Positions 1 to 48,977 of a stretch of 64,000 nt of DNA are shown here, in pieces. The notes beneath the pieces were generated by a model. It made no database searches, was not told where the DNA came from, and was given only the letters and a program-made list of their open reading frames with translations. Within the stretch, counting starts at the first letter, position 1, and every line of letters begins with the position of its first letter. The stretch is from Hyalangium minutum (GTDB lineage Bacteria > Myxococcota > Myxococcia > Myxococcales > Myxococcaceae), in assembly GCF_000737315.1 (NCBI RefSeq), contig NZ_JMCB01000013.1, forward strand, positions 186,001 through 250,000, written 5' to 3'. The position numbers and the translations under genes were made by a program.

Positions 1-264
1 AAGCGCGAGCCCACCGACATCTACGAGCTGCGCGCCATGGGCACCCCCGTGGGCCCGGATGCCGAGGCCATCCAGGCTTTCGAGGCCGGTGTGGCCTGCT
101 TCCTCGCCCGAGACTTCTCAACCGCTGAGATTCACTTCCGCCAGGTGGTGGCCCTCTGGCCCGAGGACGGGCCCAGCCTCCGCTACCTGGAGGAGATCAA
201 CACCCTGAAGTGGAACCGCCCCGGGCCCGACTGGGACGGGGTGTTCACCGCGACCACGAAGTAG
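1..264 (+). CDS. C-terminal fragment of a class III adenylate/guanylate cyclase with TPR-like tail (5' truncated by window edge)
   Basis: Frame is open from base 1 (KREPTDIYEL...AFEAGVACFLARDFSTA...WDGVF). It has the same C-terminal pattern as the cyclase at 37422-40031 (KPTPIRLHEL...YHQRRFNEA...WDGVY). The catalytic core lies outside the window. Confidence 0.7.
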   Translation, partial: KREPTDIYELRAMGTPVGPDAEAIQAFEAGVACFLARDFSTAEIHFRQVVALWPEDGPSLRYLEEINTLKWNRPGPDWDGVFTATTK

Positions 265-11205: not shown

Positions 11206-14200
11206 ATGTCGTTGCCCACGCTGCTCACCGCCGAGAACCTCCGCGCAACCGCGGGGAGCGCATTTGCGCGAGGCGAGGTGTACTGGCGTGAGGGGCGCGT
11301 GCTGTCCTGCGTCCTGGAGAACGACGCGCTCGATGGGCTGGTGGAGGGCACGGCGAAGTACCGCGTCCGGGTGACGGCTCCTGGCGGAGTGCTCGTCGCC
11401 CACTGCACGTGTCCGGTGCGGGATGCGGTCTGCAAGCATGCGGTCGCGCTCAGCCTCTCCTTCCTGGCACAGCGCGGAGCGGTGCTCGAGCCGCCGCGCG
11501 AGGCCGCCGTCGTGGTGCCGTCTCAGGAAGGGCCGTTCGCGACGCGGGACGCGCTGGATCGCTGGGCGGAGGAGCACGAGGTCCGCCATGCGCTCGCGGT
11601 CTCCGTGGCCGTGCTCTTTCCGGAGCTGCCCATCAATGAGGCGCAGCGCCAAGGGCTCCAGCATGTGCTGAACGGACTGGCGCTGAGGGACGTGGGCTCG
11701 CGGGACGGGGCGCTTCGCTATGTCGGCGCGCGCGGGAGAGGCCTGGAGACAGCGCTGACCGAAGCGGCGTGGGCATACCTGCAGCAGGAGGCGCACGCCG
11801 TCCGGCAGGGGCTCACCGAGGAGGCCGCGCGCCGCGAGTCCCACCCGGACGAGGTGCTGGCGCCGCTGTGGACCCGCCTGCTCGAGGTGCGCCGCACGCT
11901 CAGGCCCCATGCAGCTCCACGCTCTCGGGAGCGGCGGGCCTTGGGGACATGGAGCTTCGATGCGGCTGCGTGCGTGCTCACGTGGAGGGAGCGCGATCGC
12001 GTGGTCCGTGGCGGTCCGGACTACGGCACCATCGGAGTCTTGACGCGGCTCACCTTCCCCGGGGGGTACGAAGGGCGGGTGGAGTGCAGCTGTGCGACCC
12101 GGCAGCGGGGGTGCGTGCATGCGCTGGCGCTCGTGGACACCACCCTCGATGTCCTGGACGACAGCGCGCGGAACGCGGAGGCGCGAAGGATCGCCGAGGA
12201 ACTCCTTCGCCCGAGCTGGGCGCGCGCGCTGAAGGAACTCGAGCTGTTCGAGGAAGAGTCGGCCAAGCCTCGGCCCAGCATCGAGGTGTGGTGGTGCATC
12301 GAGCAGGAACTGGGCACGCAGTCCGTGTCGCCCGTCGTGAAGAAGCAGACCCGCCGGGGCATCATGAGCGCAGGTGCGAGGATGACCGCGGCGCGCCTGC
12401 TCGAAGAGCACCGCGAGCTTCTCTCCGAGACCGATCTTCGGGTCGCCGAGCAGCTGGCTTCATGGGCCCCGGCGTCCCGTGCCGCTGGGACATACCCTTC
12501 ACGGGCATTCGCAGGGCTGGTCGGGCACCCACGGGTGTTGCTCGAGTTCCGCCCCGAGGAGCCCATCGAGGTGAAGCGCGTGCGGCTGGGGTTCACCGCG
12601 CTCTCCGCCGATAACCACATTCGCCTGGAGCCCTCCATCGAGGGCGAGCGCTTCAGCCCGAAGCTGCTGGGAGCCCTGCTGCGTGCGTTCGCGCCGGGGG
12701 AACCGCTGGTCACGGTGGAGGAGCAGCGGAACCGGTGCCTGCTGATCGATGTGAACTCCGAGGCGCGGCAGATCTGGAACGTGCTGGAGAAGCACGGAGA
12801 CCAGTTCCCTCCCGAGAGCCATGAGCAGCTGCTGGAGCGCCTGTCCCGGCTCGAAGCGCGGTTGCCGCTCGTGGTCCCGCCCACGCTGAAGGGGCGCGAG
12901 CTCTCGTCCGAGACGACCACCGTCGTTCGTCTGCGCCTGCTCCCGGACGTGTCGCTGGAGCTGGAATTGCTCGTTCGGCCGGGGCCAGGGGCTCCGCTGT
13001 TCCATCCCGGCGTGGGTCCGAGAGACGTGCTTCTCACTCGCAACGGTGAACGCGGCTACGTGCGCCGTCAGCTGATCCAGGAGGAGCAGCGGGCTCGCGC
13101 GGCGATTGCCCCACTGCCGCTCGAGGGCGCGGAGGAGGGGCCGCCGTTCTGCTTCCGGATGGGGGACACGGAGTCCGCGCTGCGGCTCGTCGCGGCCCTC
13201 CAGAAGCCGCTGCCGGGAGTGGAGGTGGAGTGGCTCGACGATAAGCCGTTCGTTGCTTCGGCTGCGGGCCCGGAGTCCTTGAAGGTCGTGATCGAGCGCA
13301 AGCGGGACTGGTTCGGCATCAACGGGGATCTGAAGGTCGAGGCGGGGCGCATCGAGCTGGCTGTCCTCCTGGATGCGGCCCGGCGGCAGAAGCGCTTCGT
13401 GCGCGTGGATGCCCATCGGTGGGTCGAGCTCAGCGACACTTTGCGGAACCGCCTGCTCGCGGTGGCCGATCACACCTTCCTGGGCAAGAACCGCGCGGAG
13501 CTCTCTCCAGGAGCGGTCTCGGCGATCAGCGCGTTGCTGGAGGCGGGGGCCGACGTCCAGGCCGCGCCCGCGTGGCAGTTGATGACGGATCGTCTCGCCG
13601 CGTCGCTGTCGCTCAAGCCGAAGCCTCCCTCGTCGCTGGGGACCACGCTGCGCGACTACCAGGTGGAGGGCCATGCGTGGCTCAGCCGCGTGGCGGCCTG
13701 GGGAGCGGGAGCGTGCCTCGCGGATGACATGGGGCTCGGGAAGACGGTGCAGGCGCTGTCGGTGATGATCGAACGCTCGCGGCTCGGTCCGGCCCTGGTG
13801 CTCGCGCCGACCTCGGTGGCCTTCAACTGGACGCAGGAGATCCAGCGCTTCGCGCCCACCCTGCGGCCCGTGCTCTACGCGGAGCAGCCGGATCGGGCGA
13901 AGTGCTTGGCGAAGCTCAAGAAGACCGACGTGCTCATCGTCAGCTACGGCTTGCTGGTGCGCGACGTGGCGAGCCTCAGCACGCTCTCATTCGCCACGCT
14001 CGTCGTCGATGAAGCGCAGGCGTTGAAGAACCCGAGCACCCGGCGGGCCCGGGCCGCGCGGCAGCTGAACGCGGGCTTTCGGATCGCGCTCTCGGGGACG
14101 CCGCTGGAGAACCACCTCGGCGAGCTGTGGAGCCTCTTCACGATCGTCTTCCCGGGTCTCTTGGGGAGCTGGGAGCAATTCCGAGAGCGCTTCGCCTCGC

Positions 14201-35521: not shown

Positions 35522-36455
35522 GGCCCCTCGAGGTTCTGGCTACGAAGGCGCGATGCCCAGTCCCCGTGCACCGCAGCGCCCACGACGCGAGCCCTCTCGC
35601 GAAGACTTCGAATCGCTCCGGGTGCCTCTTTGGGTCAGCCGCTATGAGCACGAGGAGCGTGTTCCCTGCGGCCCCCCTGGCCCTGCCGTTCACACCTATG
35701 CGGTCATCATCCTCGTCACACGAGGCCAGGCGCGAGTTCGTCACGCGGGCGAGCAGGTGCTGCGGGCCGGAGATGTTCACCTCATTCCTCCCGGAGATCC
35801 GCATGGGCCGGCTCATCTCGAGGAGGTCGAGGGATGGGCGCTCGCTTTCCGGCCCGAGGCCCTGTCCCAGGAGGACGCGGGGTGGGGGAGCGAGAGCGCG
35901 GTCCACCTGGGGCCCTTTGTCCGGATCCGCAGCGGGTGCCACCCCGTGCTCCGGCCTTCTCCGGCTCAGCGCGGCCGGCTCTTGCACTGGTTCAAGCTCA
36001 TCCAGGCGGAGCTTGCCCAGGAGGAGCCCGGACGGGACGACGCCCTTCGCGCCCTGCTCCGGCTGGTGCTCGTCGAGCTGTCACGCATCGAGGCGCCCCA
36101 GAGCACTCCCGAGCTCGTGGGCCTCAGCCTGGCCCGACGTGCCCTCACGCATATCGAGGCCCACTGCCTCCAGCCGCTGTCGCTGACGGAGGTGGCGGCC
36201 GCCCTGGGCCGCTCCCCCACGCATGTGGCGGGCGTCGTCCGCCGGGAGACAGGGCGGACCGTCGGCGAGTGGATCCTGGAGTACCGCATGGCCGAGGCCC
36301 GCCGGCGCCTCCGGGGCACCGACGAGCGCGTGGACATCATCGCCGAGCGCGTGGGTTACGCGGATGTGACGCACTTCATCCGCCTCTTCCGGCGCGTCCA
36401 CGGCGTCACGCCTGCCGCCTGGAGGCGCCGGGTGACCAGCGCTTCCGGGGGCTGA
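35508..36455 (+). CDS. AraC-family regulator (cupin plus HTH)
   Basis: HTYAV...HLIPPGDPH cupin; LSLTEVAAALG...IIAERVGYADVTHFIRLFRR. Start uncertain (35508 or 35553). Confidence 0.92.
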   Translation: MEAVEAPRGSGYEGAMPSPRAPQRPRREPSREDFESLRVPLWVSRYEHEERVPCGPPGPAVHTYAVIILVTRGQARVRHAGEQVLRAGDVHLIPPGDPHGPAHLEEVEGWALAFRPEALSQEDAGWGSESAVHLGPFVRIRSGCHPVLRPSPAQRGRLLHWFKLIQAELAQEEPGRDDALRALLRLVLVELSRIEAPQSTPELVGLSLARRALTHIEAHCLQPLSLTEVAAALGRSPTHVAGVVRRETGRTVGEWILEYRMAEARRRLRGTDERVDIIAERVGYADVTHFIRLFRRVHGVTPAAWRRRVTSASGG

Positions 36456-36466
36456 GCCGCGCAGGG

Positions 36467-37330
36467 CTATTGCGTGTGCACCACGCCCACGTCCGCGGTG
36501 CCGGCCAGCAGCGCGCTTCCCAGGAAGAGGTTCTCCGACTGGGGGCCCCCAGTGCGAACCGACTGGAAGATGACCAGGTACGTCTGCTTCGGCAGAGGGA
36601 AGGCACTGCCGGGGATCGTTACGCGCTTCACCTTCCAGTCTACCGGCGCGGCGACGAGCTTGATGAAGTCCAGCGGAGCCTTCGGCACGTTCGTGTAGGT
36701 GGGCTCGCCCTGCTGGCCGCTGTCGCTCACCGGGATCACCGTCACGAAGCCCAGCGTCCGCTCCTGCCCAGAGGCCGGCTCTGCTCGGTCGAACGCCAGC
36801 TCCGTGTTAGCCGCCATCCGCACCACCCCCGCCGCCGGATGCAACGCGGGGATGTTCTCCCGGGCGGGCGCCTCCTTCACCTGGCCGACGAACTTCTCGC
36901 CCCCGCGCTCGGCGATGAATTCATAGGTGGCCCCGTTCTGGTATGTCAGCGTCGCGTCGCTGTTGCTCGAGCGGCTGTACGAGCCAAAGCCGTCGCTGGT
37001 GAGGGACACCTTCTGGGTGCCGTTGGTCTGTATTGTCACCGTGGCACCCGTCAGGCCCTCGGGGGTGGCGTTCGTTCCGTTGCGCGTGCCCATGAAGACC
37101 ACGGCCGCTGTCTGGCCCGGGAGGGTGAAGGAGGACTGGCCTCCGTCCGCCTGCACGCCCCCGTCCAGGCCCGCGACGGCCTCGGGCGAGATGGCCACAT
37201 CCGGTGTGGAGAGCAGGGTGCCCACCATCACCGTCTCGGCGGAGATCTGGTTCGCGGTCTTCTCGAGATCGCACGCCAGGGGTGCAAGGCAGCAGACGGC
37301 TACAGCGGAAAGCAGGAAGAGGCGTTTCAT
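36467..37330 (-). CDS. Lipoprotein of unknown function
   Basis: MKRLFLLSAVAVCCLAPLAC lipobox; beta-rich mature region. Confidence 0.8.
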   Translation of the reverse strand: MKRLFLLSAVAVCCLAPLACDLEKTANQISAETVMVGTLLSTPDVAISPEAVAGLDGGVQADGGQSSFTLPGQTAAVVFMGTRNGTNATPEGLTGATVTIQTNGTQKVSLTSDGFGSYSRSSNSDATLTYQNGATYEFIAERGGEKFVGQVKEAPARENIPALHPAAGVVRMAANTELAFDRAEPASGQERTLGFVTVIPVSDSGQQGEPTYTNVPKAPLDFIKLVAAPVDWKVKRVTIPGSAFPLPKQTYLVIFQSVRTGGPQSENLFLGSALLAGTADVGVVHTQ

Positions 37331-37421
37331 CTGAATCGAATCCTTCCAAGAAGCCCGGCCCTGCAAGAGAGCATATCAGTCCCCCCCACGACAGGCGCGG
37401 GCGCGGTATCCTTGTGGCCCC

Positions 37422-40031
37422 GTGCAGAGCCGCCCCGTCCAGTCCTCCGGCCGCCGCTTCCTCAAGCGGCTGGGGTTTGCCCTCCTTCAGACCGCCATCT
37501 TCGGCTCCCTGATTGGCGGGCTCGTCTACGTCCGCGTGCCGCGGACGCAGCTGGACTCAGAGGGGGCTCCGCAGACGGTCCTCACCTGGCTGGTGGGTCT
37601 TATCGAGCGCCCCGAGAGCCTCACCTATGACGCCCGCGCGCGAGCCCTTGGGGAGTCCCTCCAGCGGCAGCGCCTCAAGGATGCCCAGCACCCGGAGCGC
37701 GTCGTCGTCGTGACGGTGGACGACGACACCCTGAGCAACGCGCAACAGAGCCAGCACCGGGAGCTCGCCTCCTACCCTTGGCCCCGCGAGGTGATGGGCG
37801 GGATGACGCGCCGGCTGGTAGAGGAGGGCGCTTCCATCGTGTTGATCGACACGCTCTTCCCCGAGTTGAGCCCGCGCGGGTGCTTCACCCAGGATCCTCA
37901 GGCCGAAGGGGGCTCCGAAGAGGCCTCCGATGACGAGCTCTTCCGCAAGGGGCTCAGCCAGGATCCCGGCCGCTCCGTGCTCGCCTTCAGCTGGAGTGTC
38001 CCCCGGGCCAGCCCGCCCTCGTTCCAGCTGTGGCCCTACCGCGCACGCGTGGGCTCGCACCCGGGACAGGCCGACGCCCGCACCCAGGCCCAGCAGGTGC
38101 TCGCCCTGCAGCGGCCCGCCTTCCTCATTCCCTCAGGAGATCGGGTGGAGGTGTGGGCCGGCGTCGAGGATGAGCGCGAAGGCCAGGTGCTCGCCGCCAA
38201 GCTCGGCTCGCCCCCGGCCCCGGCCCTCGTCCGGGAGCGCCGCAGCGCGGATGACGCCTCGCGAATCACTCCGCTGGATCTCTTCGTCTCGCTGGCCGAG
38301 GTGGAGGTAGAGGGGCTCGATCCTTCCCTGTTGCTGAAGGTGCGCACGCTGCGCCACCCCGTGGTGCAACTGCTGGGCTCCCAGAGCCTCCTGGGCTCGG
38401 TGACGGCCTTCCCGGACGCCGATGGCGTCGTCCGGGGCATGCTCCACCTCGTCAATTACGAGCCCCGCGAGGGCGAACACCACATCCTCCCCTCGCAGCC
38501 CCTGGCCGCCGCCATGAAGCTGGCGGGCACCCGGAAGCTCCGCTACGCCGATGGCCGCCTCTCCGTGGGCGACGCCTACTCGTTCCCCATGGACGAGACG
38601 GGCTACAGCCTCACGCGCTGGGAGGCCGGAGACGCGGGCCGCACGGCGGGCGCCTCGGTGTTCCGCACCCTCCGCGCCTGGAACATCCTGCTCAACCTCT
38701 TCGATCTCCGCGAAGGCCGGCCGCCGCGCTCGGCGCATGATCTCGAGCAGCGCGCCGTCGTCCTCACGAACACCTCCACCTATGCCACCGAGTACCGCGC
38801 CACGCCCATTGGCGAGACGACGCCTCGGGGCGCCGTGCTCGCGCAGTCGCTGGAGAACATCCTTCAGTCCGAGGGCATCGTCCGGGCCCCGCCCCGGATG
38901 GACCTGTACCTGACGATGGGCATGGCCTTCTTCGGGGCCACCATCGCCTTCTTCTTCAGCCGCAGCTTCCGCTCCGGCTTCGGTGCCGTCCTCTACTTCT
39001 CCAGCGCGGTGGCCGCGCTCGTGGCCTACTACTTCGTGGCCCGCTACGTCTTCGTGGAGAAGCAGCTGTGGATCGCCGTCGCCGGTCCGCAGTTCGCCAT
39101 GGTGGCCACGTTCCTCCTCACCACCGTGTACACCGTCCGCACGGAGGACGAGATCCGCGACTTCGTCAACCACGCGCTCGGCCGCTACGTGAGCCCCGAG
39201 GTGGCCCGGCTCGTCACGAGAGATCTCTCCCTGCTGGTGCACCCCGAGCGCCGGCCGATGACGATCTTCTTCTGTGACATCGCCGGCTTCACCCGGCTCT
39301 CCGAGCAGATGGAGCCGCTGCGGCTCGTCCAGTTCCTCAACGAGTACCTCACGGAGATGACGCTGGCGGTGCGTGCCTCGGGCGGCCAGGTGGACAAGTA
39401 CATCGGCGACACGGTGATGGCCTTCTGGGGCGCCCCCGTGCGCACCGATCGCCATGCCCACCTGGCCTGTGACGCCTTCCTGAAGATGCACGCCCTGGTG
39501 CAGGAGCGCCAGGAGGCCTGGGTGAAGAAGTACGGCCAGCGCATCCTGTTCCGCGCTGGCATCAACAGCGGCGACGTCGTCGTGGGCGACATGGGCACCG
39601 AGCTCAAGTCCAACTACACCGTGTTCGGCGACGCCGTGGGCCTGGCCTCGTGGCTGGAGGGCTGCAACAAGTTCTACGGCACCGTGGCCCTGGTGGGGGA
39701 GGCGACCGCCCAGCTCGCTCGCGACGCCTACGTCTTCCGGGAGGTGGATCGCGTGCTGGTGAAGAACAAGCCCACGCCCATCCGTCTCCATGAGCTGCTC
39801 GGGCGCCACGGGGAGATCTCTCCGCGCATGCAGGAGCAGCTCGGCCTCTACGAGCAGGCGTTGACCGCCTATCACCAGCGCCGCTTCAACGAGGCGCTCG
39901 AATTGTTCGAGCGCTGCTCCTCGGAGTATCAGGACACCGTCGCAGCCGTGTATGCGGGCCGGTGCCGTCGCTTCCTCGTCAGCGCCCCGGCGGAGGACTG
40001 GGATGGCGTCTACGAAGTCGGGGAGAAGTGA
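37422..40031 (+). CDS. CHASE2-domain class III adenylate/guanylate cyclase homolog (degenerate active site)
   Basis: CHASE2 motifs (VVTVDDDT, YPWPR, DADGVVR, TPIG..PRG), 3 TM helices, FCDIAGFT, DKYIGD and GINSG. The N/R motif reads GDAVGLASWLEG. Confidence 0.9.
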   Translation: MQSRPVQSSGRRFLKRLGFALLQTAIFGSLIGGLVYVRVPRTQLDSEGAPQTVLTWLVGLIERPESLTYDARARALGESLQRQRLKDAQHPERVVVVTVDDDTLSNAQQSQHRELASYPWPREVMGGMTRRLVEEGASIVLIDTLFPELSPRGCFTQDPQAEGGSEEASDDELFRKGLSQDPGRSVLAFSWSVPRASPPSFQLWPYRARVGSHPGQADARTQAQQVLALQRPAFLIPSGDRVEVWAGVEDEREGQVLAAKLGSPPAPALVRERRSADDASRITPLDLFVSLAEVEVEGLDPSLLLKVRTLRHPVVQLLGSQSLLGSVTAFPDADGVVRGMLHLVNYEPREGEHHILPSQPLAAAMKLAGTRKLRYADGRLSVGDAYSFPMDETGYSLTRWEAGDAGRTAGASVFRTLRAWNILLNLFDLREGRPPRSAHDLEQRAVVLTNTSTYATEYRATPIGETTPRGAVLAQSLENILQSEGIVRAPPRMDLYLTMGMAFFGATIAFFFSRSFRSGFGAVLYFSSAVAALVAYYFVARYVFVEKQLWIAVAGPQFAMVATFLLTTVYTVRTEDEIRDFVNHALGRYVSPEVARLVTRDLSLLVHPERRPMTIFFCDIAGFTRLSEQMEPLRLVQFLNEYLTEMTLAVRASGGQVDKYIGDTVMAFWGAPVRTDRHAHLACDAFLKMHALVQERQEAWVKKYGQRILFRAGINSGDVVVGDMGTELKSNYTVFGDAVGLASWLEGCNKFYGTVALVGEATAQLARDAYVFREVDRVLVKNKPTPIRLHELLGRHGEISPRMQEQLGLYEQALTAYHQRRFNEALELFERCSSEYQDTVAAVYAGRCRRFLVSAPAEDWDGVYEVGEK

Positions 40032-40035
40032 CGCC

Positions 40036-41121
40036 GTGGGCCGCTCTCGGCGCAGGGGTGCGTCCTGGGTGCTCGGAGGGGTGCTCGCGGGGGCTCTCTC
40101 GGCGTGCCAGGCGGGGAACACGCCTGCGCTGCTCGCCCGGGCCGAGCAGAGCCTCGAGGAAAGCCGGGGCCAGCTGAGCCGCGAGCTGGATCAGCGCAAG
40201 GGGGTGGGCCTCATGGGGGCCTCGCTCACCGGGTGCTCCCTGGAGCGCCGCAAGGCCTACGAGCTGGACGCCGAGCAGGAGGCCACCTTGGGCCAGGCCG
40301 TCGCCGCGCGTCAGCTTGCGCTGCTGGGCGTCGAGCCGCTGCCCACCACGGAGCCGGTGGCGCGTTACGTGGATCAGCTCGGGCAGTACCTCGCGCTCGT
40401 GGCCGCAGCGGTAGGCAACGCCAACGGCCCGGATCGCGCCAGCGGACCCGAGCGGGCCCTCGACAACCGCCCCTGGCCTCACGCGGGCTACCAGTTCCAG
40501 GTGCTGCCGCTGGAAGAGCCGCGGGCCTCGGGATCTCCCGGGGGCATCGTCTTCATTTCCACGGGCTTCCTGCGCGCGATGGGCAGCGAGGAGGAACTGG
40601 CTGCGGTGCTGTCCCATGAGCTGGCCCACCTGCAGCGCGGGCACGGCGTAGAAGCCATCAAGGCTGCCCTGTGTGACTACGAAGCGCGCCAGGAGTCCTC
40701 GGCCAAGCTTCAGTCCTTCAATCAGCGTCTCAAGCTGCAGCGCCAGACGGCCGCTGCAGGCTCTCGGACGGCGGAGGAGGCGGCGAACCTCTCCCGCGAG
40801 GGCTTCCCCGAGGGGCTCGAGTTGGAGGCGGACCGTATTGCCGTGCGCATTCTGCTGGCCGCGGGGTACGACGCCCGAGCCTTCACCGGGCTGCTCCAGC
40901 GTCTCAACCTGGAGGCCCCCGCCAAGCACCCCTGGCGCCGCACGCACCCGCAGCCTCGGGAGCGGGTGGCGGTGGTGGAGGAGCGGCTGAAGGCGCTCGG
41001 GCCTTCGCAGGCCTGGCCCACACCCGAGACGGTGGCTTCACGAACCCAGCGCTTCCACGAGGCCATGAGCGTACTGCCCACCCCGGTGGCAGGACCGCAA
41101 TCCCTCCTCCCGCCCCCGTAG
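40036..41121 (+). CDS. M48-family zinc metallopeptidase, lipoprotein
   Basis: Lipobox ALSAC; ASGSPGG.VFISTG, HELAH (HExxH), ELEAD and RTHPQP. Confidence 0.88.
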   Translation: MGRSRRRGASWVLGGVLAGALSACQAGNTPALLARAEQSLEESRGQLSRELDQRKGVGLMGASLTGCSLERRKAYELDAEQEATLGQAVAARQLALLGVEPLPTTEPVARYVDQLGQYLALVAAAVGNANGPDRASGPERALDNRPWPHAGYQFQVLPLEEPRASGSPGGIVFISTGFLRAMGSEEELAAVLSHELAHLQRGHGVEAIKAALCDYEARQESSAKLQSFNQRLKLQRQTAAAGSRTAEEAANLSREGFPEGLELEADRIAVRILLAAGYDARAFTGLLQRLNLEAPAKHPWRRTHPQPRERVAVVEERLKALGPSQAWPTPETVASRTQRFHEAMSVLPTPVAGPQSLLPPP

Positions 41122-41132
41122 GCGCGAGCGGT

Positions 41133-41489
41133 CTACGGATCCTCGTCCGGGTTGCCGAAGAGCTCGCGGATGGGCTTGTCCTCGGCAATGTGCTCGGTCA
41201 CCACCCGGCGCATCTTCTCGGGCGTCATCCGCGAGTAATAAACCTCCCCAGGCCAGCCCATGAGCTGGAAGTCCTCGGGAGAGAGCGGATCCCGCTTGCG
41301 CCCGGTGTCCTCGCGGATCACCACGTTGGGGCCCATGTGGCAGAAGCCGTAGCAGCCGCCCCGGTACGCCTCGCAGCGCGGAACGAGGGCTCGCTGGGCG
41401 AGTTCCTCCTTGGCCGCGGCGAACACGGCATCGGACCCGTTGCCCTTGCAGTCCATGCCTTTGCACACGGAGAGGCGGTAGCGCTTCAT
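41133..41489 (-). CDS. Thioredoxin-like [2Fe-2S] ferredoxin (NuoE-fold)
   Basis: CKGMDC ... CYGFCHMGPNV (C-x4-C...C-x3-C) and YYSRMTPE. Confidence 0.85.
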   Translation of the reverse strand: MKRYRLSVCKGMDCKGNGSDAVFAAAKEELAQRALVPRCEAYRGGCYGFCHMGPNVVIREDTGRKRDPLSPEDFQLMGWPGEVYYSRMTPEKMRRVVTEHIAEDKPIRELFGNPDEDP

Positions 41490-41622
41490 CGGGTTCACCC
41501 TACGGGAGTTGCCAGAGACGGGGAAGAGGCGGCCAGGCGAGCGGCCCCCTGAAACGGCACCGGCCCGCGTCCGCTTCCTCGGCAGAGGGAGCAGGGCGGG
41601 CCGGAGCACCCAGCGCGTGGGG

Positions 41623-42342
41623 TTACTTGTGCTTCGGAGCCGTGCCCGCGTGCAGCTGCTTGGGCTCGTGGCCCTTGCCCACGGCGTGCGGCGTCTTGAG
41701 CTGCACCAGGCCCTCGCCAATGCGCGTGTGGGCCTCCTTGTGCACGTGGTGCGGCTCCTCGGAGCCCTCGCGCTTGTTCCACGGATCCGACGGGTGCGAC
41801 ACCGCCGGGCCCTTCAGCAGCTTGGGGATGTCGTACACGAAGCCCTGGCGGTTGTACTCGGGCTTGGTGTGCTCGTAGGTGTCCATGCGGATGGCGTCCT
41901 TGGGGCACGCCTCCACGCACAGGCCGCAGACGATGCAGCGCAGCTCGTCGATGACGAACTGAGTGGGGTACTTCTCGATGACGCGAGACTCACCCTCCTT
42001 GTCCGCGTGCTCGTACTCACCCGCCTCGATGTAGATGCACTGCGCCGGGCAGATGGTGGCGCACATGTAGCAAGCCACGCAGCGCGGCTTGCCATCATCC
42101 CGAGGAACCAGGCGGTGCAGCCCGCGGTAGCCGGGAGGGTAGGGGATCTTCTCTTCCGGGTACTCGACGGTGGTGATGAGGCTGGTGCCCTTGCGGTCCA
42201 CCACCGAGGTGTTCGTGTCGCGCGTTCCGAAGAGGTTCCGGAAGAAGTGGCGCGCGGTGATGCCCAGCCCCTTGAGGAGCTCCGGGAGATAGGCCCGCTC
42301 GCGGACATCCGTGCGGGGATCTTGGGTCGCCTTGTAGCCCAT
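41623..42342 (-). CDS. nuoI: NADH:quinone oxidoreductase subunit I
   Basis: [24 protein letters not shown] and [12 protein letters not shown]. Confidence 0.95.
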
Positions 42343-42368
42343 GACAGTCCTTGTCTTTCCTCGGAAGC

Positions 42369-43883
42369 CTAATGCGTGGAGGCCGTGTGTGCACCTGCGT
42401 GGGCCGGGGCGTGCCCGCCCAGCGTCGCCGAGGCGTGGCCCGCCGCCGGCAGCGCGTGGCCGTGAGCCGCACCCGGCAGCCCGTGCGCGTCATGTCCACC
42501 GCCGTGGCCCAGGGCGCCGTGGCCCCCGCCGTGGCCGGGCTCACCCTTGACCATCTCCTTGCTGGAGAGCGTCAGGGCCACCAGCACGCCAATCTGGAAG
42601 AGCCCGAACAGCGCCAGGTAGCGCAGCGAGGGATCCCACAGCACCAGCGCGCCGCTGATGAACACGTTGGCCAGGCCCACGGGCAGCAGCATCTTCCAGC
42701 CCAGCGTCTGGATCTGATCGTAGCGGAAGCGGGGGAACGTCCAGCGGATGAGCAGCTGCAGGAAGCACAGCAGCAGCACCTTGATCCAGAAGATCGTCCC
42801 CATCAGCGTGGCGTACACCAGCGGGTAGTCCCGCAGGTGGCTGGCCACCCACTCGCCGCCGAAGGGCAGGTGGTAGCCGCCAAAGAAGAGCGCCGCGACG
42901 ACGCCCGACAGCACCACCACCTCGACGAACTCGGAGATCATGAACAGGCCGAACTGCATGCCCGAGTACTCCACGAAGTAGCCGATGATCTCGGACTCAC
43001 CTTCCGGCACGTCGAACGGGGCGCGCTTCGTCTCGGCGAAGGCCGCCGCGAAGAAGCCGATGAAGCCAATGGGCTGCAGGATGATGCCCCACGTCGGCAG
43101 GCCGAAGTCGAAGCCCTCGCCCGCGGCGCCGCCCGTCCACTGCCACAGGTAGCGCGCCTGGCCGGAGGCCTCGCTGCCCGTCTCCGCCGCCAGCGCGCCG
43201 ACGATGGACGGCAGCTGCACGGAGGAGAACGCCAGCATGAGGCCCACCAGCGACAGGCCCAGCGCCACCTCGTAGGAGATCATCTGCGAGGAGGCGCGCA
43301 CGCCGCCCAGCAGGGCGAACTTGTTGTTGGAGGCCCAGCCGGCCAGCGCCGTGCCGTACACCGCCAGCGAGGCGATGGCGAACAGGTAGAGCAGGCCGAA
43401 GTCCGGGGTGGCCACCACCATGTCCACGTTGTGGCCGAACACCTGCACCGAGGGGCCCGCGGGGACGATGGCGAACAGGGCGAACACCGGCCCGAACGCC
43501 AGCAGAGGCCCCAGGTTGAACAGGAACTTGTTCGCGTTCTCCGGCCGGAAGGCCTCCTTGGTCAGCATCTTCAAGGAGTCCGCCGCCACGAAGGGCAGGC
43601 CCGCCAGCGAGCGGTTCTTCAGGCCCGGCAGGGCGATGCGCGCGCGGTTCGGGCCGATGCGGTCCTGCATCAGCGCGCTCCACTTGCGCTCGGCCAGCGT
43701 GAGCAGCGTGGCGATGACCATCACGAACAGGAGCATCAGGAAGATGATGTTCGTGAGCCGGCTGGCGCCGGTGAACAGGTACTGCTCCGCCAGGCCACCC
43801 ACCACGTAGGTGCCGAGCACCACGGCGGCGAGCAGGCCGATGATGAAGCCGATGGCGAAGAGGACAGTGAGAATGCGAGCCAT
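42369..43883 (-). CDS. nuoH: NADH:quinone oxidoreductase subunit H
   Basis: [47 protein letters not shown] and PRFRYDQ; His-rich C-terminal tail. Confidence 0.95.
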
Positions 43884-45766
<1,883 letters not shown>

Positions 45767-45770
<4 letters not shown>

Positions 45771-47017
45771 TGCTCGACCTCGCCGCCGATCATGTTGATC
45801 ATGTCAAAGGTGGGAATGAGGTCCGCCAGCATCTTCCCCTCGATGATCTGAGGAATGGCGGAGAGGATGGGGAAGCCCGGCGCGCGGACGTGGACCTTGT
45901 AGGGCCGGCCGCCGCCGTCGCTCACCAGGTACCAGCCCAGCTCGCCGTTGGCCGCCTCGGTGCTGTCGTACACCTCGCCCGGCGGCACCGGGATGCCCTC
46001 CATCACCAGCTTGAAGTGCGACATGACACCTTCGATGGTGCCGTACACCTCGGGCTTGGGCGGCAGGGCGATGCGCCAGTCATCCACGATGATGGGGCCG
46101 CTGGGCAGCTTGGCCAGCGCCTGCCGGATGATGCGATCCGACTGCTTCATCTCCTCGAGCCGCATGATGTAGCGGTCGTAGTTGTCGCCGTGCGTGCCCA
46201 CCGGCACATCGAAGTCCAGCTGGCTGTAGACCCAGTAGGGCTTGGCCTTGCGCACGTCGTAGTCCACGCCAGCGGCGCGCAGGCAGGGGCCGGTGAAGCC
46301 AAAGTCCAGGGCATCCTCGGCGGAGAGGAGGCCGGTGCCCTTCATGCGGTCCACGAAGATGCGGTTCTTCATCAGCAGCCCCTCGACCTCCACGAGGAGC
46401 TCCTGGATCTTGTCCAGGGACTTGATCGTCTTCGGGATCCACCCCTCGGGCAGGTCGCGGTTGAGGCCGCCCACGCGCCCGTAGCTGGTGGTGAGGCGCG
46501 CGCCGGTCAGCTCCGTCACGCGGTCCATGATGAGCTCACGGCCCTCGATGGCGTAGAGGAACGGAGCGAACCCGCCGAGCTCCAGCGCCGTGGCGCCCAC
46601 GCACGTGAGGTGATCGTGCATGCGGTGCAGCTCGGAGGCGATCACGCGGATGTACTGGGCGCGCTCAGGGATCTCCAGGCCGATGAGCTTCTCCACGGCG
46701 TTGAGGAACCCGAAGTTGTTCATCATCGCCGAGTTGTAGTTGAGCCGGTCCGTGTACGGCAGACACTGCGTCCACGTGACGTTCTCGCAGCTCTTCTGGA
46801 AGCCTCGGTGGAGGAAGCCGATCTCCGGGTCGGCCTTGATGATCGTCTCTCCCTCCAGCTCCACCTTCATGCGCACGGTGCCGTGCATGGCGGGGTGAGA
46901 GGGGCCCATGTTGATGTACATCCGCTTGGGCTGGAGGTGAGCCTCCAGCTCCGACTCGTGGGCGTACGCGTCGGTGTCCGGGTTGGGCGCTTCAGGCTGC
47001 TTGGAAGGGTCCGACAT
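45767..47017 (-). CDS. nuoD: NADH:quinone oxidoreductase subunit D
   Basis: NMGPSHPAMHGTVR, IGFLHRG, TDRLNY, GELGWY and GGEVEQ. Confidence 0.96.
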
Positions 47018-47054
47018 GGAGGAGAGTCCTCGGAAGGCGAAAGGGGCCGGGGCT

Positions 47055-47588
47055 TCAGGAGAGGCCGCTGGTGCCGGGGCCGCGGAAGATGTCCTTGATG
47101 GGGCGCTCGGGGATCAGCGGCTGCCGGTCGCGCAGGGCGTAGTCCTTGCGCAGCGGGTGCCCCTGGAACTCGTCGTACATGAGGATGCGGCGCAGATCCG
47201 GATGGCCCACGAACTTGATGCCGTAGAAGTCGTAGGTGAGGCGCTCCCACCAGTTGGCGCCCTTGTAGAGAGGAACCAGCGAGGGCACCTCGGGAGTCGT
47301 CTCGGTGACGCGCACCTTGAGGCGCACGTGCTCGTTTCGCGTGAGCGAGTAGAGGATGTAGATGATCTCGAAGCGCGGATCGCTCTCGGCCAGGTGCAGC
47401 CGGTCCACGGCATCGATGGAGCCGAAGAGCTTGAAGTTCAGCTCCGGATCATTGCGGAGATACGCCGCCACCTTCGGCAGGTGCTGAGCATGGATGACGG
47501 CCCAGGCGCCGCCGGCCCTGTCGTCGTAGCGCTCCGCGACCGCCTCCGGAAGGTGGGCGGAGACCCTGTCCAACGCGAATGTGCTCAA
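47055..47588 (-). CDS. nuoC: NADH:quinone oxidoreductase subunit C
   Basis: RFEIIYILYS, ERLTYDFYGIKFVGHPDLRRILM and GHPLRKDY; TTG start uncertain. Confidence 0.93.
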   Translation of the reverse strand: MSTFALDRVSAHLPEAVAERYDDRAGGAWAVIHAQHLPKVAAYLRNDPELNFKLFGSIDAVDRLHLAESDPRFEIIYILYSLTRNEHVRLKVRVTETTPEVPSLVPLYKGANWWERLTYDFYGIKFVGHPDLRRILMYDEFQGHPLRKDYALRDRQPLIPERPIKDIFRGPGTSGLS

Positions 47589-47702
47589 AAGGGGGCCCCA
47601 ATGGCAGAAGAATCCGCGGCTTTATAGGGAGGGCAGCCCGCAGCGTCAACGTAAAACCCCCAGCCATGTAGGGCACTTACGCGCGCTAGAAGCGAGGGGG
47701 CC

Positions 47703-48977
47703 TCAGGCGGCGGCGGAGGTGCCCCCAGGGCGGGCGGATCCGTGGGGCTCGGGAATGAAGAGCGAGACGGGCAGCGTCTTGCCGGGGACGGTGGCCGGGG
47801 GGGCCTCTCGCCAGAGGAAGGCCTCTCCCGCCTGCTCACGGGTCGTCCGGGACACCAGCACGGGGGCGCCCGCCGTCTTGGTGAGGCGCTCAATGCGGCT
47901 GGCCAGGTTCACGGTGTCGCCAATGGCGGTGTACTCCAGGCGCCGGGTGGAAGAGCCGATGTTGCCCAGCACCACGGGCCCAGTGTGGACACCTACACCC
48001 ATTCGCAGGCCTGGCTCGCCCCGGGCGGCGCGCTCGGCGTTGACGGCCTCGAGCTCGGCCACCATGTCCAGGGCGCACTGCACGCCCCGCCGGGCATGCT
48101 CGGCATCCGCGATGGGAGCGCCGAAGTACACCATCAGTGCGTCGCCGATGAACTTGTCGAGCGTGCCGCCATGGCGGAATACCACCTCCACCATGCGCCC
48201 GTAGTACTCGTTGAGGATGGCCACCACCTGCTGGGGGGGCAGGCGCTCGCTGAGGGCGGTGAAGTCCCGGATGTCGGCGAACAGGAGCGTCACCTCGCGC
48301 AGCTCTGGGTGGGTCTTCGAGATGGCCAGATCCTGGAGCCGCTCGGCGACGGCAGGGGAGAAGTAGCGGCCGAGCCGGGCCCGCTTGAGCTCCTCGCGCG
48401 TGACGGCCGAGAGCAGGGCGCGGATGCGCAGCAGCAGGTGGGAGGCGCCCGCGGCGCTGGCTGCCAGGACGACCACGGCGGCCACCTGCGCGCCGATGGC
48501 GATGCCGGCCTGCTGTTGGAGCAGCACCTCCGTGATGGCCGCGACCCCGGTGACCGCCAAGGTCCCCAGGCGGCGCAGGGAGAGGGCGGACAGGAGGATG
48601 AGGCAGACGTAGATGCCCAGGGTGAAGCCCGCCACGCCGCCTGGGGAGGGGGAGAGGGGCAGTGACAGGGTCTGGAGCCAGAAGATGGCGGGGACGTCGA
48701 CGAGGGCCAGCGTCATGCCGGACCAGCGCGCGATCCACTGGAAGTGGTAGACGCCGCCCAGGACGAGTGCGGTGACGGCCCAGTACGCAGCGAAGGGGGT
48801 GGAGTAGATGGCCCAGTCGGCGAGCCCGCGCAGGAAGCCCAGGTAGAGGGTGACGGCGAAGACGGCAGAGACGGCGAGGAAGCGCACCCACGACAGATGG
48901 AGCGCATTTCGCGCCCGCTCAGTGTCGAGTGCCCGCGAGAGGCTCTGCTCGGTAGTGGGCGCTGCCGCTTCCTTCAT
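47703..48977 (-). CDS. Multi-TM class III adenylate cyclase with a canonical active site
   Basis: About 6 TM segments; [21 protein letters not shown] and [16 protein letters not shown]. Confidence 0.93.

Follow-up and report, generated by a model that had tools for sequence, protein, structure and literature searches.

Introduction

The active sites of class III nucleotide cyclases span a dimer interface. One subunit supplies a pair of metal-binding aspartate residues; the other supplies the substrate-specifying lysine and threonine (or aspartate), together with an asparagine and an arginine, by which the ribose is oriented and the transition state at the alpha-phosphate stabilised. In eukaryotic adenylyl and guanylyl cyclases the dimer is asymmetric, with the metal site in one half and the transition-state residues in the other. 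Degenerate cyclase domains are a known phenomenon. For the way in which such asymmetry evolved out of symmetric homodimers in bacteria, engineered mutants have until now been the main illustration. A 64,000-nucleotide stretch of Hyalangium minutum DSM 14724 (hereafter the window; part of contig JMCB01000013.1, GCA_000737315.1; G+C content 68%) was analysed, in which the forward-strand gene at 37422..40031 encodes a CHASE2 receptor with a class IIIb cyclase homology domain. Both transition-state residues of this domain are replaced, asparagine by glycine and arginine by tryptophan. Residue states are given below as the residue at the asparagine position followed by that at the arginine position, so that this protein is in the G/W state and canonical cyclases are in the N/R state.

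Mammalian transmembrane adenylyl cyclases (tmACs) and the chytrid NeoR/RGC proteins are heterodimers with two non-equivalent sites (PMC8815786). The NeoR and RGC genes are adjacent and lie on opposite strands (PMC10622942, PMC8815786). The R376A mutant of Rv1625c has no activity by itself but gives an active dimer when paired with the D300A mutant, also if the membrane anchors of the two halves differ (PMC4821796).

Results

Domain architecture and catalytic residues

The reading frame at 37422..40031 (+) is unbroken over 869 residues from a GTG start, and the same gene is called in GCA_000737315.1. A CHASE2 sensor domain (residues 58-500; 37593..38921, +) was identified with Pfam (E 5e-25) and in the secondary structure of an AlphaFold2 model. 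It is flanked by an N-terminal transmembrane helix (residues 9-36) and a C-terminal bundle of transmembrane helices (residues 491-586). The cyclase homology domain was matched to Pfam Guanylate_cyc (PF00211) over residues 610-783 (E 2.8e-22), and its modelled fold extends over residues 609-795 (39249..39806, +). The Pfam matches and model helices together give the architecture of CHASE2 receptor cyclases, namely transmembrane helix, CHASE2, transmembrane bundle and output domain. The protein closes with a three-helix TPR-like tail (39807..40031, +; assigned from Pfam, the model and substitution rates), which ends in a conserved P..WDG motif.

The AlphaFold2 model of the 869-residue protein was built with 82 homologues and has a mean pLDDT (predicted local distance difference test) of 89.2 and a pTM (predicted template modelling score) of 0.75. 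The CHASE2 part is modelled as mixed alpha/beta and the tail helices occupy residues 801-853. The cyclase core, residues 609-795, has the canonical order of secondary structure with pLDDT >90 over most of its length. When this core was compared by Foldseek with CyaC (1WC1) and CyaB (3R5G), target-normalised TM-scores of 0.85-0.91 and a root-mean-square deviation of about 2 Å were obtained. As modelled, the fold of the cyclase domain is intact.

Positions 39621-39662, read in the frame of the gene, translate as VFGDAVGLASWLEG. In phmmer alignments, Gly740 (GGC, 39639..39641, +) and Trp744 (TGG, 39651..39653, +) stand opposite the asparagine and arginine of GREVNLASRLE in Pseudomonas aeruginosa CyaB (3R5G) and of GPSVNIAARLQ in Spirulina CyaC (1WC0/1WC1). 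The class IIIb motif at this place in solved relatives is G..VN.A(S/A)R(L/I)(E/Q), in all cases with both asparagine and arginine. In the model both replaced residues sit on helix alpha4 (residues 737-752). The remaining catalytic residues are kept. The first metal-binding aspartate is Asp619 in FFCDIAGFT (39276..39278, +); the adenine-specifying Lys659 and the second metal aspartate, Asp663, lie in VDKYIGD (39396..39410, +); and the second substrate-specifying residue, of class IIIb type, is Thr733 in YTV (39618..39620, +), assigned from the phmmer alignment.

The fold and four of the six signature residues (the metal aspartate pair, the lysine and the threonine) place the protein in the class IIIb cyclase homology family and among the CHASE2 receptor cyclases. 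Since neither transition-state residue is present, it is not to be filed as a proven adenylate cyclase. An earlier note on this DNA, made from the letters and a list of open reading frames, had proposed that asparagine and arginine were replaced at 39639 and 39651, that both metal aspartates and the substrate lysine remained, and that the reading frame was otherwise intact. Translation, the alignment to solved class IIIb cyclases and the Pfam matches bear out each of these points, and Thr733 is to be added to the retained residues.

No Pfam family was matched by the long open reading frames on the opposite strand, and no Rfam family was matched over 36000-42000; an opposite-strand feature or RNA element was dropped as an explanation on these results. 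The change from arginine to tryptophan at this position (CGG to TGG) was also seen outside the CHASE2 family, in an unrelated class III cyclase of the TPR/ATPase type (P0100), which reads GDTVNVASWLEH.

Fixation of the G/W state in a Hyalangium clade

A protein search returned about 80 full-length relatives. Glycine and tryptophan are found in all 12 of the closest protein clusters (76-100% identity), among them clusters from H. gracile and H. versicolor as well as from metagenomes. The GGC and TGG codons recur in five independent assemblies (H. minutum, H. gracile, H. versicolor and metagenome-assembled genomes) with synonymous differences in the adjacent codons, and a sequencing error is thereby excluded. 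The next clade, comprising H. rubrum and relatives, is a syntenic sister group at 61-74% identity. It carries asparagine (AAC) and arginine (CGG or CGC). Relative to these codons, the change to glycine requires two base changes, both transitions, and the change to tryptophan one. The earlier note had argued from the two-base change that a read error was unlikely, which holds, and had asked whether orthologues conserve the two residues. They are fixed across the multi-species clade, and a strain-specific loss is ruled out by their presence in all five assemblies and 12 clusters.

Orthology was assessed from gene order and from a neighbour-joining tree of the relatives. All Myxococcaceae members carry a divergent lipoprotein gene upstream, most also carry a nuo-like cluster downstream, and the tree follows genera. 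Paralogy as the source of the mixed residue states was rejected on these grounds. The G/W change arose once, on the stem of the H. minutum/H. gracile/H. versicolor clade, and was accompanied by a group of further substitutions in the pocket.

One G/W orthologue (L018:9980-12588, contig CAVSWU010000003.1) is interrupted by frameshifts at two or more places, near 11263 and near 12327. The contig belongs to a metagenome bin, and the frameshifts are either assembly errors or a sign of a true pseudogene.

Selection and remodelling of the pocket

Ratios of nonsynonymous to synonymous substitution (dN/dS) were calculated for six orthologues by the Nei-Gojobori method. The figures are relative, dS being probably underestimated because of the strong bias in G+C content at third codon positions. 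Within the G/W clade, dN/dS of the cyclase domain is 0.10-0.43, and in the N/R pair it is 0.155. Values are 0.20-0.35 for the CHASE2 region and 0.11-0.24 for the C-terminal tail, which is the most constrained part of the protein. The cyclase domain is evidently kept by purifying selection in the G/W clade; loss of catalytic residues from a domain that stays under such selection is one mark of a pseudoenzyme. When the G/W clade is compared with the N/R clade, the cyclase-domain ratio rises to 0.28-0.53 and that of residues 725-760 to 0.43-0.97.

Eleven positions are fixed differently between the two clades, and eight of these fall within the 191-residue cyclase domain (P = 5e-4 by length, 4e-5 with domain-rate weighting). 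Five of the eleven (S726T, M735F, N740G, R744W and A748C) lie in residues 726-748, a stretch of strand beta5 and helix alpha4 (39597..39665, +). The corresponding P of 5e-6 is descriptive only, as this 23-residue window was picked after the data had been seen. A further clade-fixed change, A664T, directly follows the second metal aspartate. At most of the eleven positions the residue of the N/R clade recurs in more distant N/R sequences, so those changes are placed on the G/W stem. The other catalytic and phosphate-binding residues, K729, K/R781 and K783, are kept in the G/W clade. The pattern reads as a single episode of pocket remodelling followed by stasis, and not as decay.

Residue states across the orthologue group

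Changes were counted by Fitch parsimony on an 80-sequence tree of orthologues. The asparagine and arginine positions each changed eight times. By the same count, Asp619 changed once, Asp663 not at all, Lys659 twice (in single sequences) and Thr733 twice (between threonine and serine). Positions 740 and 744 evolve like average sites of the cyclase domain (70th percentile); the four retained positions are among the slowest.

The N/R state is found in the H. rubrum group, in some Corallococcus and Aggregicoccus relatives and on deeper branches, and is probably ancestral. Myxococcus, Pyxidicoccus and Corallococcus are in the G/R or S/R state, Aggregicoccus relatives in the S/R state and a distant clade of metagenome-assembled genomes in the A/R state. 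The G/W state is that of the H. minutum clade. Among the matches listed, all of the approximately 45 CHASE2 cyclase loci of other phyla have both asparagine and arginine, and only in the Myxococcaceae group of orthologues does helix alpha4 depart from VN..(A/S)R.

Where the asparagine alone is replaced, the arginine is invariant (17 of 17 sequences in the Myxococcus/Corallococcus group), which speaks for continued use of their own catalytic half by these orthologues. Replacement of the asparagine alone is the rule in most Myxococcaceae lineages, and this suggests that its loss by itself does not abolish function in the family. For the Hyalangium G/W clade, the further loss of arginine is the decisive step. 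In M. xanthus, the cyclase gene cyaA lies upstream of mokA; the gene order of the orthologue, which has no histidine kinase gene beside it, does not match this.

A second, independent lineage without the arginine was observed in Archangium and Cystobacter (L007, proteins P0024-P0063), which reads YSVMGESVKLSMFLE. Lysine occupies the asparagine position in all 22 sequences, and the arginine position drifts among hydrophobic residues (Phe, Tyr, Leu or Val). Both metal aspartates and the substrate lysine are likewise invariant (22/22), K729 is changed to glutamate and the first metal loop reads FCDLDGFS. The new lysine looks like a relocated catalytic positive charge. In the G/W clade no positive charge was found that could replace the arginine in the vicinity of helix alpha4. 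Among the clade-fixed changes, T703K alone introduces a basic residue; it lies at the distal end of helix alpha3, and a compensating basic residue was judged unlikely. In both lineages the arginine has given way to aromatic or hydrophobic residues.

Candidate partners and neighbouring genes

Two canonical class III cyclases are encoded within 37 kb of the G/W gene, one of them syntenic across genera; no further cyclase domain was found within the 64 kb. The first candidate partner is a small membrane-anchored class IIIb cyclase of 424 residues on the reverse strand (47703..48977/49049). It had been named in the earlier note as an intact cyclase, and the full set of six catalytic residues was read there. 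As a co-evolving partner it was set aside, no supporting signal having been found in synteny or residue comparison. The second is an 801-residue paralogous CHASE2 cyclase, the 3' end of which lies at 1..264 (+) and contains LFSDIRGFT, LDKYIGD and YTVMGDAVNLASRLE. As a degenerate complementary partner it was rejected, being fully canonical and situated in its own cyclase-Crp-phosphodiesterase operon.

That operon appears to be a complete cyclic AMP (cAMP) unit at 1-1725, continued upstream at L083:7542-9947. After the 801-residue cyclase it encodes a Crp-like cyclic nucleotide-binding regulator (318-968) and a metallo-beta-lactamase-fold protein (970-1725), which matches class II cAMP phosphodiesterases and, weakly, the anti-Pycsar Apyc1 family. 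The small cyclase stands at the head of a minus-strand cluster (41133-48977) of nuoC, nuoD, nuoG-like, nuoH and nuoI-like genes and a 2Fe-2S thioredoxin-like relative of NuoE; a cyclase heading an operon that resembles a respiratory complex is unusual. The cluster and small cyclase converge with the CHASE2 gene. The same gene order is also present in several Hyalangium-like genomes and in Myxococcus, Corallococcus and Archangium.

The gene directly upstream of every Myxococcaceae orthologue encodes, in the window, a divergent lipoprotein of 287 residues (36467..37330, -) with a signal peptide containing the lipobox LAPLAC and no Pfam match. It is the most constant neighbour of the CHASE2 gene, even in the distant clade, at 36-39% identity, and may be a co-sensor for the CHASE2 domain. 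Downstream, an M48 peptidase gene (40003..41121, +) overlaps the cyclase stop by 29 nucleotides. In Kofleriaceae, Elusimicrobia and other phyla, too, CHASE2 cyclase genes are closely followed by an M48 gene (L015, L017, L036-L040, L070). This suggests an old gene pair, lost at this locus by Myxococcus, Corallococcus and Archangium. In H. rubrum (N/R), the gene for a multi-PAS histidine kinase of 1077 residues is inserted upstream of the lipoprotein/CHASE2-cyclase pair (L085:5796-9029). At that position H. minutum and a second locus (L086) have GntR, oxidoreductase and AraC-type genes, and the block varies between lineages.

Discussion

The reading favoured here, tentatively and at somewhat less than an even chance, is that the CHASE2 receptor is a selected, non-autonomous half-enzyme of the mammalian C1 type, working through dimer partners. 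Its cyclase domain probably still binds ATP and makes no cAMP by itself. The G/W homodimer would bind Mg-ATP at both interface sites and cyclise it very poorly or not at all, since by analogy with Rv1625c R376A, inactive alone, such a homodimer should be crippled. The aspartate pair of the receptor would instead join the Lys/Thr/Asn/Arg half of a canonical class III partner to make up one active site. The receptor's own half, made more hydrophobic by F735, G740, W744 and C748, would leave a degenerate pocket at the pseudo-symmetric site that serves for binding only, as in mammalian C1. The CHASE2 input would then tune the output of another cyclase rather than make cAMP. The continued constraint on the aspartate pair, K659 and T733 indicates that the domain is neither a mere scaffold nor decaying. 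A C1-like role is favoured also by the strict keeping of both metal aspartates and by the absence of another output domain.

Several observations weigh against this reading. Both candidate partners carry all six catalytic residues, and a complementary partner lacking the aspartates and keeping asparagine and arginine was not found within the window or its flanks. The identity of 31% between the 801-residue paralogue and the 869-residue protein is limited to the C-terminal half, mostly the cyclase part; the sensor and membrane parts are very different, and the sensors can hardly be aligned. In both H. gracile (G/W) and H. rubrum (N/R) the syntenic place lacks the small cyclase. No substitution in the small cyclase tracks the N/R state of the CHASE2 gene, its catalytic motifs being identical throughout, so that neither the conserved linkage nor the co-variation that marks partners of the heterodimeric class was seen for it. 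A pure aspartate donor would not need K659 and T733, the retention of which fits a homodimeric ATP-binding role equally well. The invariance of the two aspartates, the lysine and the threonine within the G/W clade is by itself weak evidence, as 71% of all sites in the cyclase domain do not vary in that clade. Finally, the invariant arginine of lineages that have lost only the asparagine indicates that the ancestral mode was probably that of an autonomous homodimer. The earlier note had read the protein as a C1-like subunit or nucleotide-binding regulator. As to the loss of asparagine and arginine, the keeping of aspartates and lysine, the intact fold and selection on the domain, this stands; the partners which it named show no complementary loss of aspartate.

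The same lack of a complementary partner is consistent with a homodimeric pseudo-cyclase, a reading that is considered unlikely. The receptor would dimerise with itself, bind Mg-ATP without turnover and signal by conformation or contacts, for instance through the TPR-like tail, or act as an ATP sensor or sink. K659 and T733 belong to the same half-site as the lost asparagine and arginine, and their invariance is expected if the protein's own pocket binds an adenine nucleotide. The strong constraint on the tail points the same way. However, beyond the cyclase domain and the 75-residue tail no possible output domain is recognisable by Pfam, and the strict keeping of both metal aspartates exceeds what nucleotide binding alone usually needs.

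It is rather more improbable that the protein is still an autonomous cyclase of low or differently assisted activity, in which the asparagine would be dispensable and a water molecule, a backbone atom or another basic residue would cover the role of the arginine. Mutants of either residue in mammalian and mycobacterial enzymes, from the Tang and Schultz laboratories, are said to have kcat reduced by one to three orders of magnitude. Dispensability of the asparagine is suggested by the glycine, serine or alanine at its position in most Myxococcaceae orthologues, in which the arginine is invariant, and relocation of charge by the lysine of Archangium and Cystobacter. K729, K/R781 and K783 would also be available in the G/W clade. 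That clade nevertheless has no substitute positive charge near helix alpha4, T703K being at the distal end of helix alpha3, and in Rv1625c a single change of arginine to alanine is inactivating (PMC4821796).

A changed chemistry or ligand, by which the remodelled pocket (T664, T726, F735, G740, W744 and C748) would handle something other than the conversion of ATP to cAMP, is very improbable. The concentration of fixed substitutions in the pocket, the stasis that followed and the aromatic or hydrophobic replacements of arginine in both lineages would be in keeping with it; but the metal and purine residues are unchanged, no precedent was found in the literature searched and no associated enzyme genes were seen. 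An artefact, or a gene lately inactivated in one strain and turning into a pseudogene, as the frameshifts of the metagenomic orthologue might suggest, is scarcely credible given the recurrence of the codons in five assemblies and 12 clusters, the intact reading frame, dN/dS well below 1 in every domain and the origin of the frameshifted contig in a metagenome bin.

A broader, more doubtful proposal may be made: that Myxococcaceae receptor cyclases are moving from symmetric homodimers to C1-like subunits, and that in two independent lineages the receptor's own half has become a hydrophobic, binding-only regulatory pocket. The graded series N/R to G/R to G/W, with a parallel K/F branch, would trace this course. 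If true, the pocket would be a bacterial counterpart of the forskolin site, and the G/W receptor would modulate a canonical cyclase as its natural heteromeric or allosteric subunit. In the literature searched, no description was found of a bacterial CHASE2 receptor in which the loss of both residues is fixed in a clade and selected, of recurrent freeing of exactly these two positions in one syntenic orthologue group, or of a graded natural series. The orthologue group supplies close, syntenic natural proteins in the states N/R, G/R, S/R, A/R, K/F and G/W, which can be compared directly. For the G/W members, and perhaps for those in the K/F state, "adenylate/guanylate cyclase" as given in public annotation probably claims more function than the proteins have.

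Comparison with known systems

Canonical CHASE2 cyclases, that is the 801-residue paralogue and the loci of other phyla mentioned above, have the same order of transmembrane helix, CHASE2, transmembrane bundle, cyclase and TPR-like tail with a WDG end, and an M48 peptidase gene is often found downstream, as for the G/W gene. They differ in that all of those among the matches listed keep VN..(A/S)R on helix alpha4. The homodimeric class IIIb enzymes CyaB (3R5G) and CyaC (1WC0/1WC1) are the best matches of known structure (E 1e-28 and 3e-24) and have the two aspartates, the lysine, the threonine and the topology in common with the G/W protein; they differ in the asparagine and arginine on helix alpha4 and in their N-terminal modules.

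The G/W protein is the natural equivalent of the R376A half of the engineered Rv1625c pair D300A + R376A (Guo et al. 2001, cited in PMC4821796). By that account the R376A half is in principle rescuable by a subunit that supplies the arginine. The Rv1625c pair, as described there, differs in being a laboratory construct of class IIIa, the halves of which are identical but for the point mutations. In NeoR/RGC of chytrid fungi and in the alpha/beta soluble guanylyl cyclase (sGC), as here, receptor-cyclase paralogues are involved, and those proteins work only as heterodimers with two non-equivalent sites. These systems are eukaryotic and their subunits have differing catalytic sets, whereas the neighbours of the G/W gene are fully canonical and not tightly paired with it.

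A subunit with the metal aspartate pair and without the transition-state asparagine and arginine, as found in the heterodimeric class (C1/C2 of tmACs, sGC alpha/beta, NeoR/RGC), is found here also, and the protein is a candidate member of the obligate heterodimers. The G/W protein differs from the mammalian C1 domain (1AZS, 1CJK) in being a separate bacterial class IIIb polypeptide, in having threonine, not aspartate, as the second specificity residue, and in its fusion to a CHASE2 sensor. No C2-like partner was found within the 64 kb or the flanks. Its state is recent, having arisen within one genus from a canonical ancestor of the homodimer type. The likenesses are those of residues, of pocket and of family. 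The metal aspartate pair is kept and the transition-state residues are absent in both; a degenerate hydrophobic pocket is predicted at the pseudo-symmetric position, comparable with the forskolin site (principle in PMC8815786); and the domain family is the same, VC1 being matched by phmmer with E of about 4e-7. In its predicted way of working, it is the C1 domain that the G/W protein most resembles.

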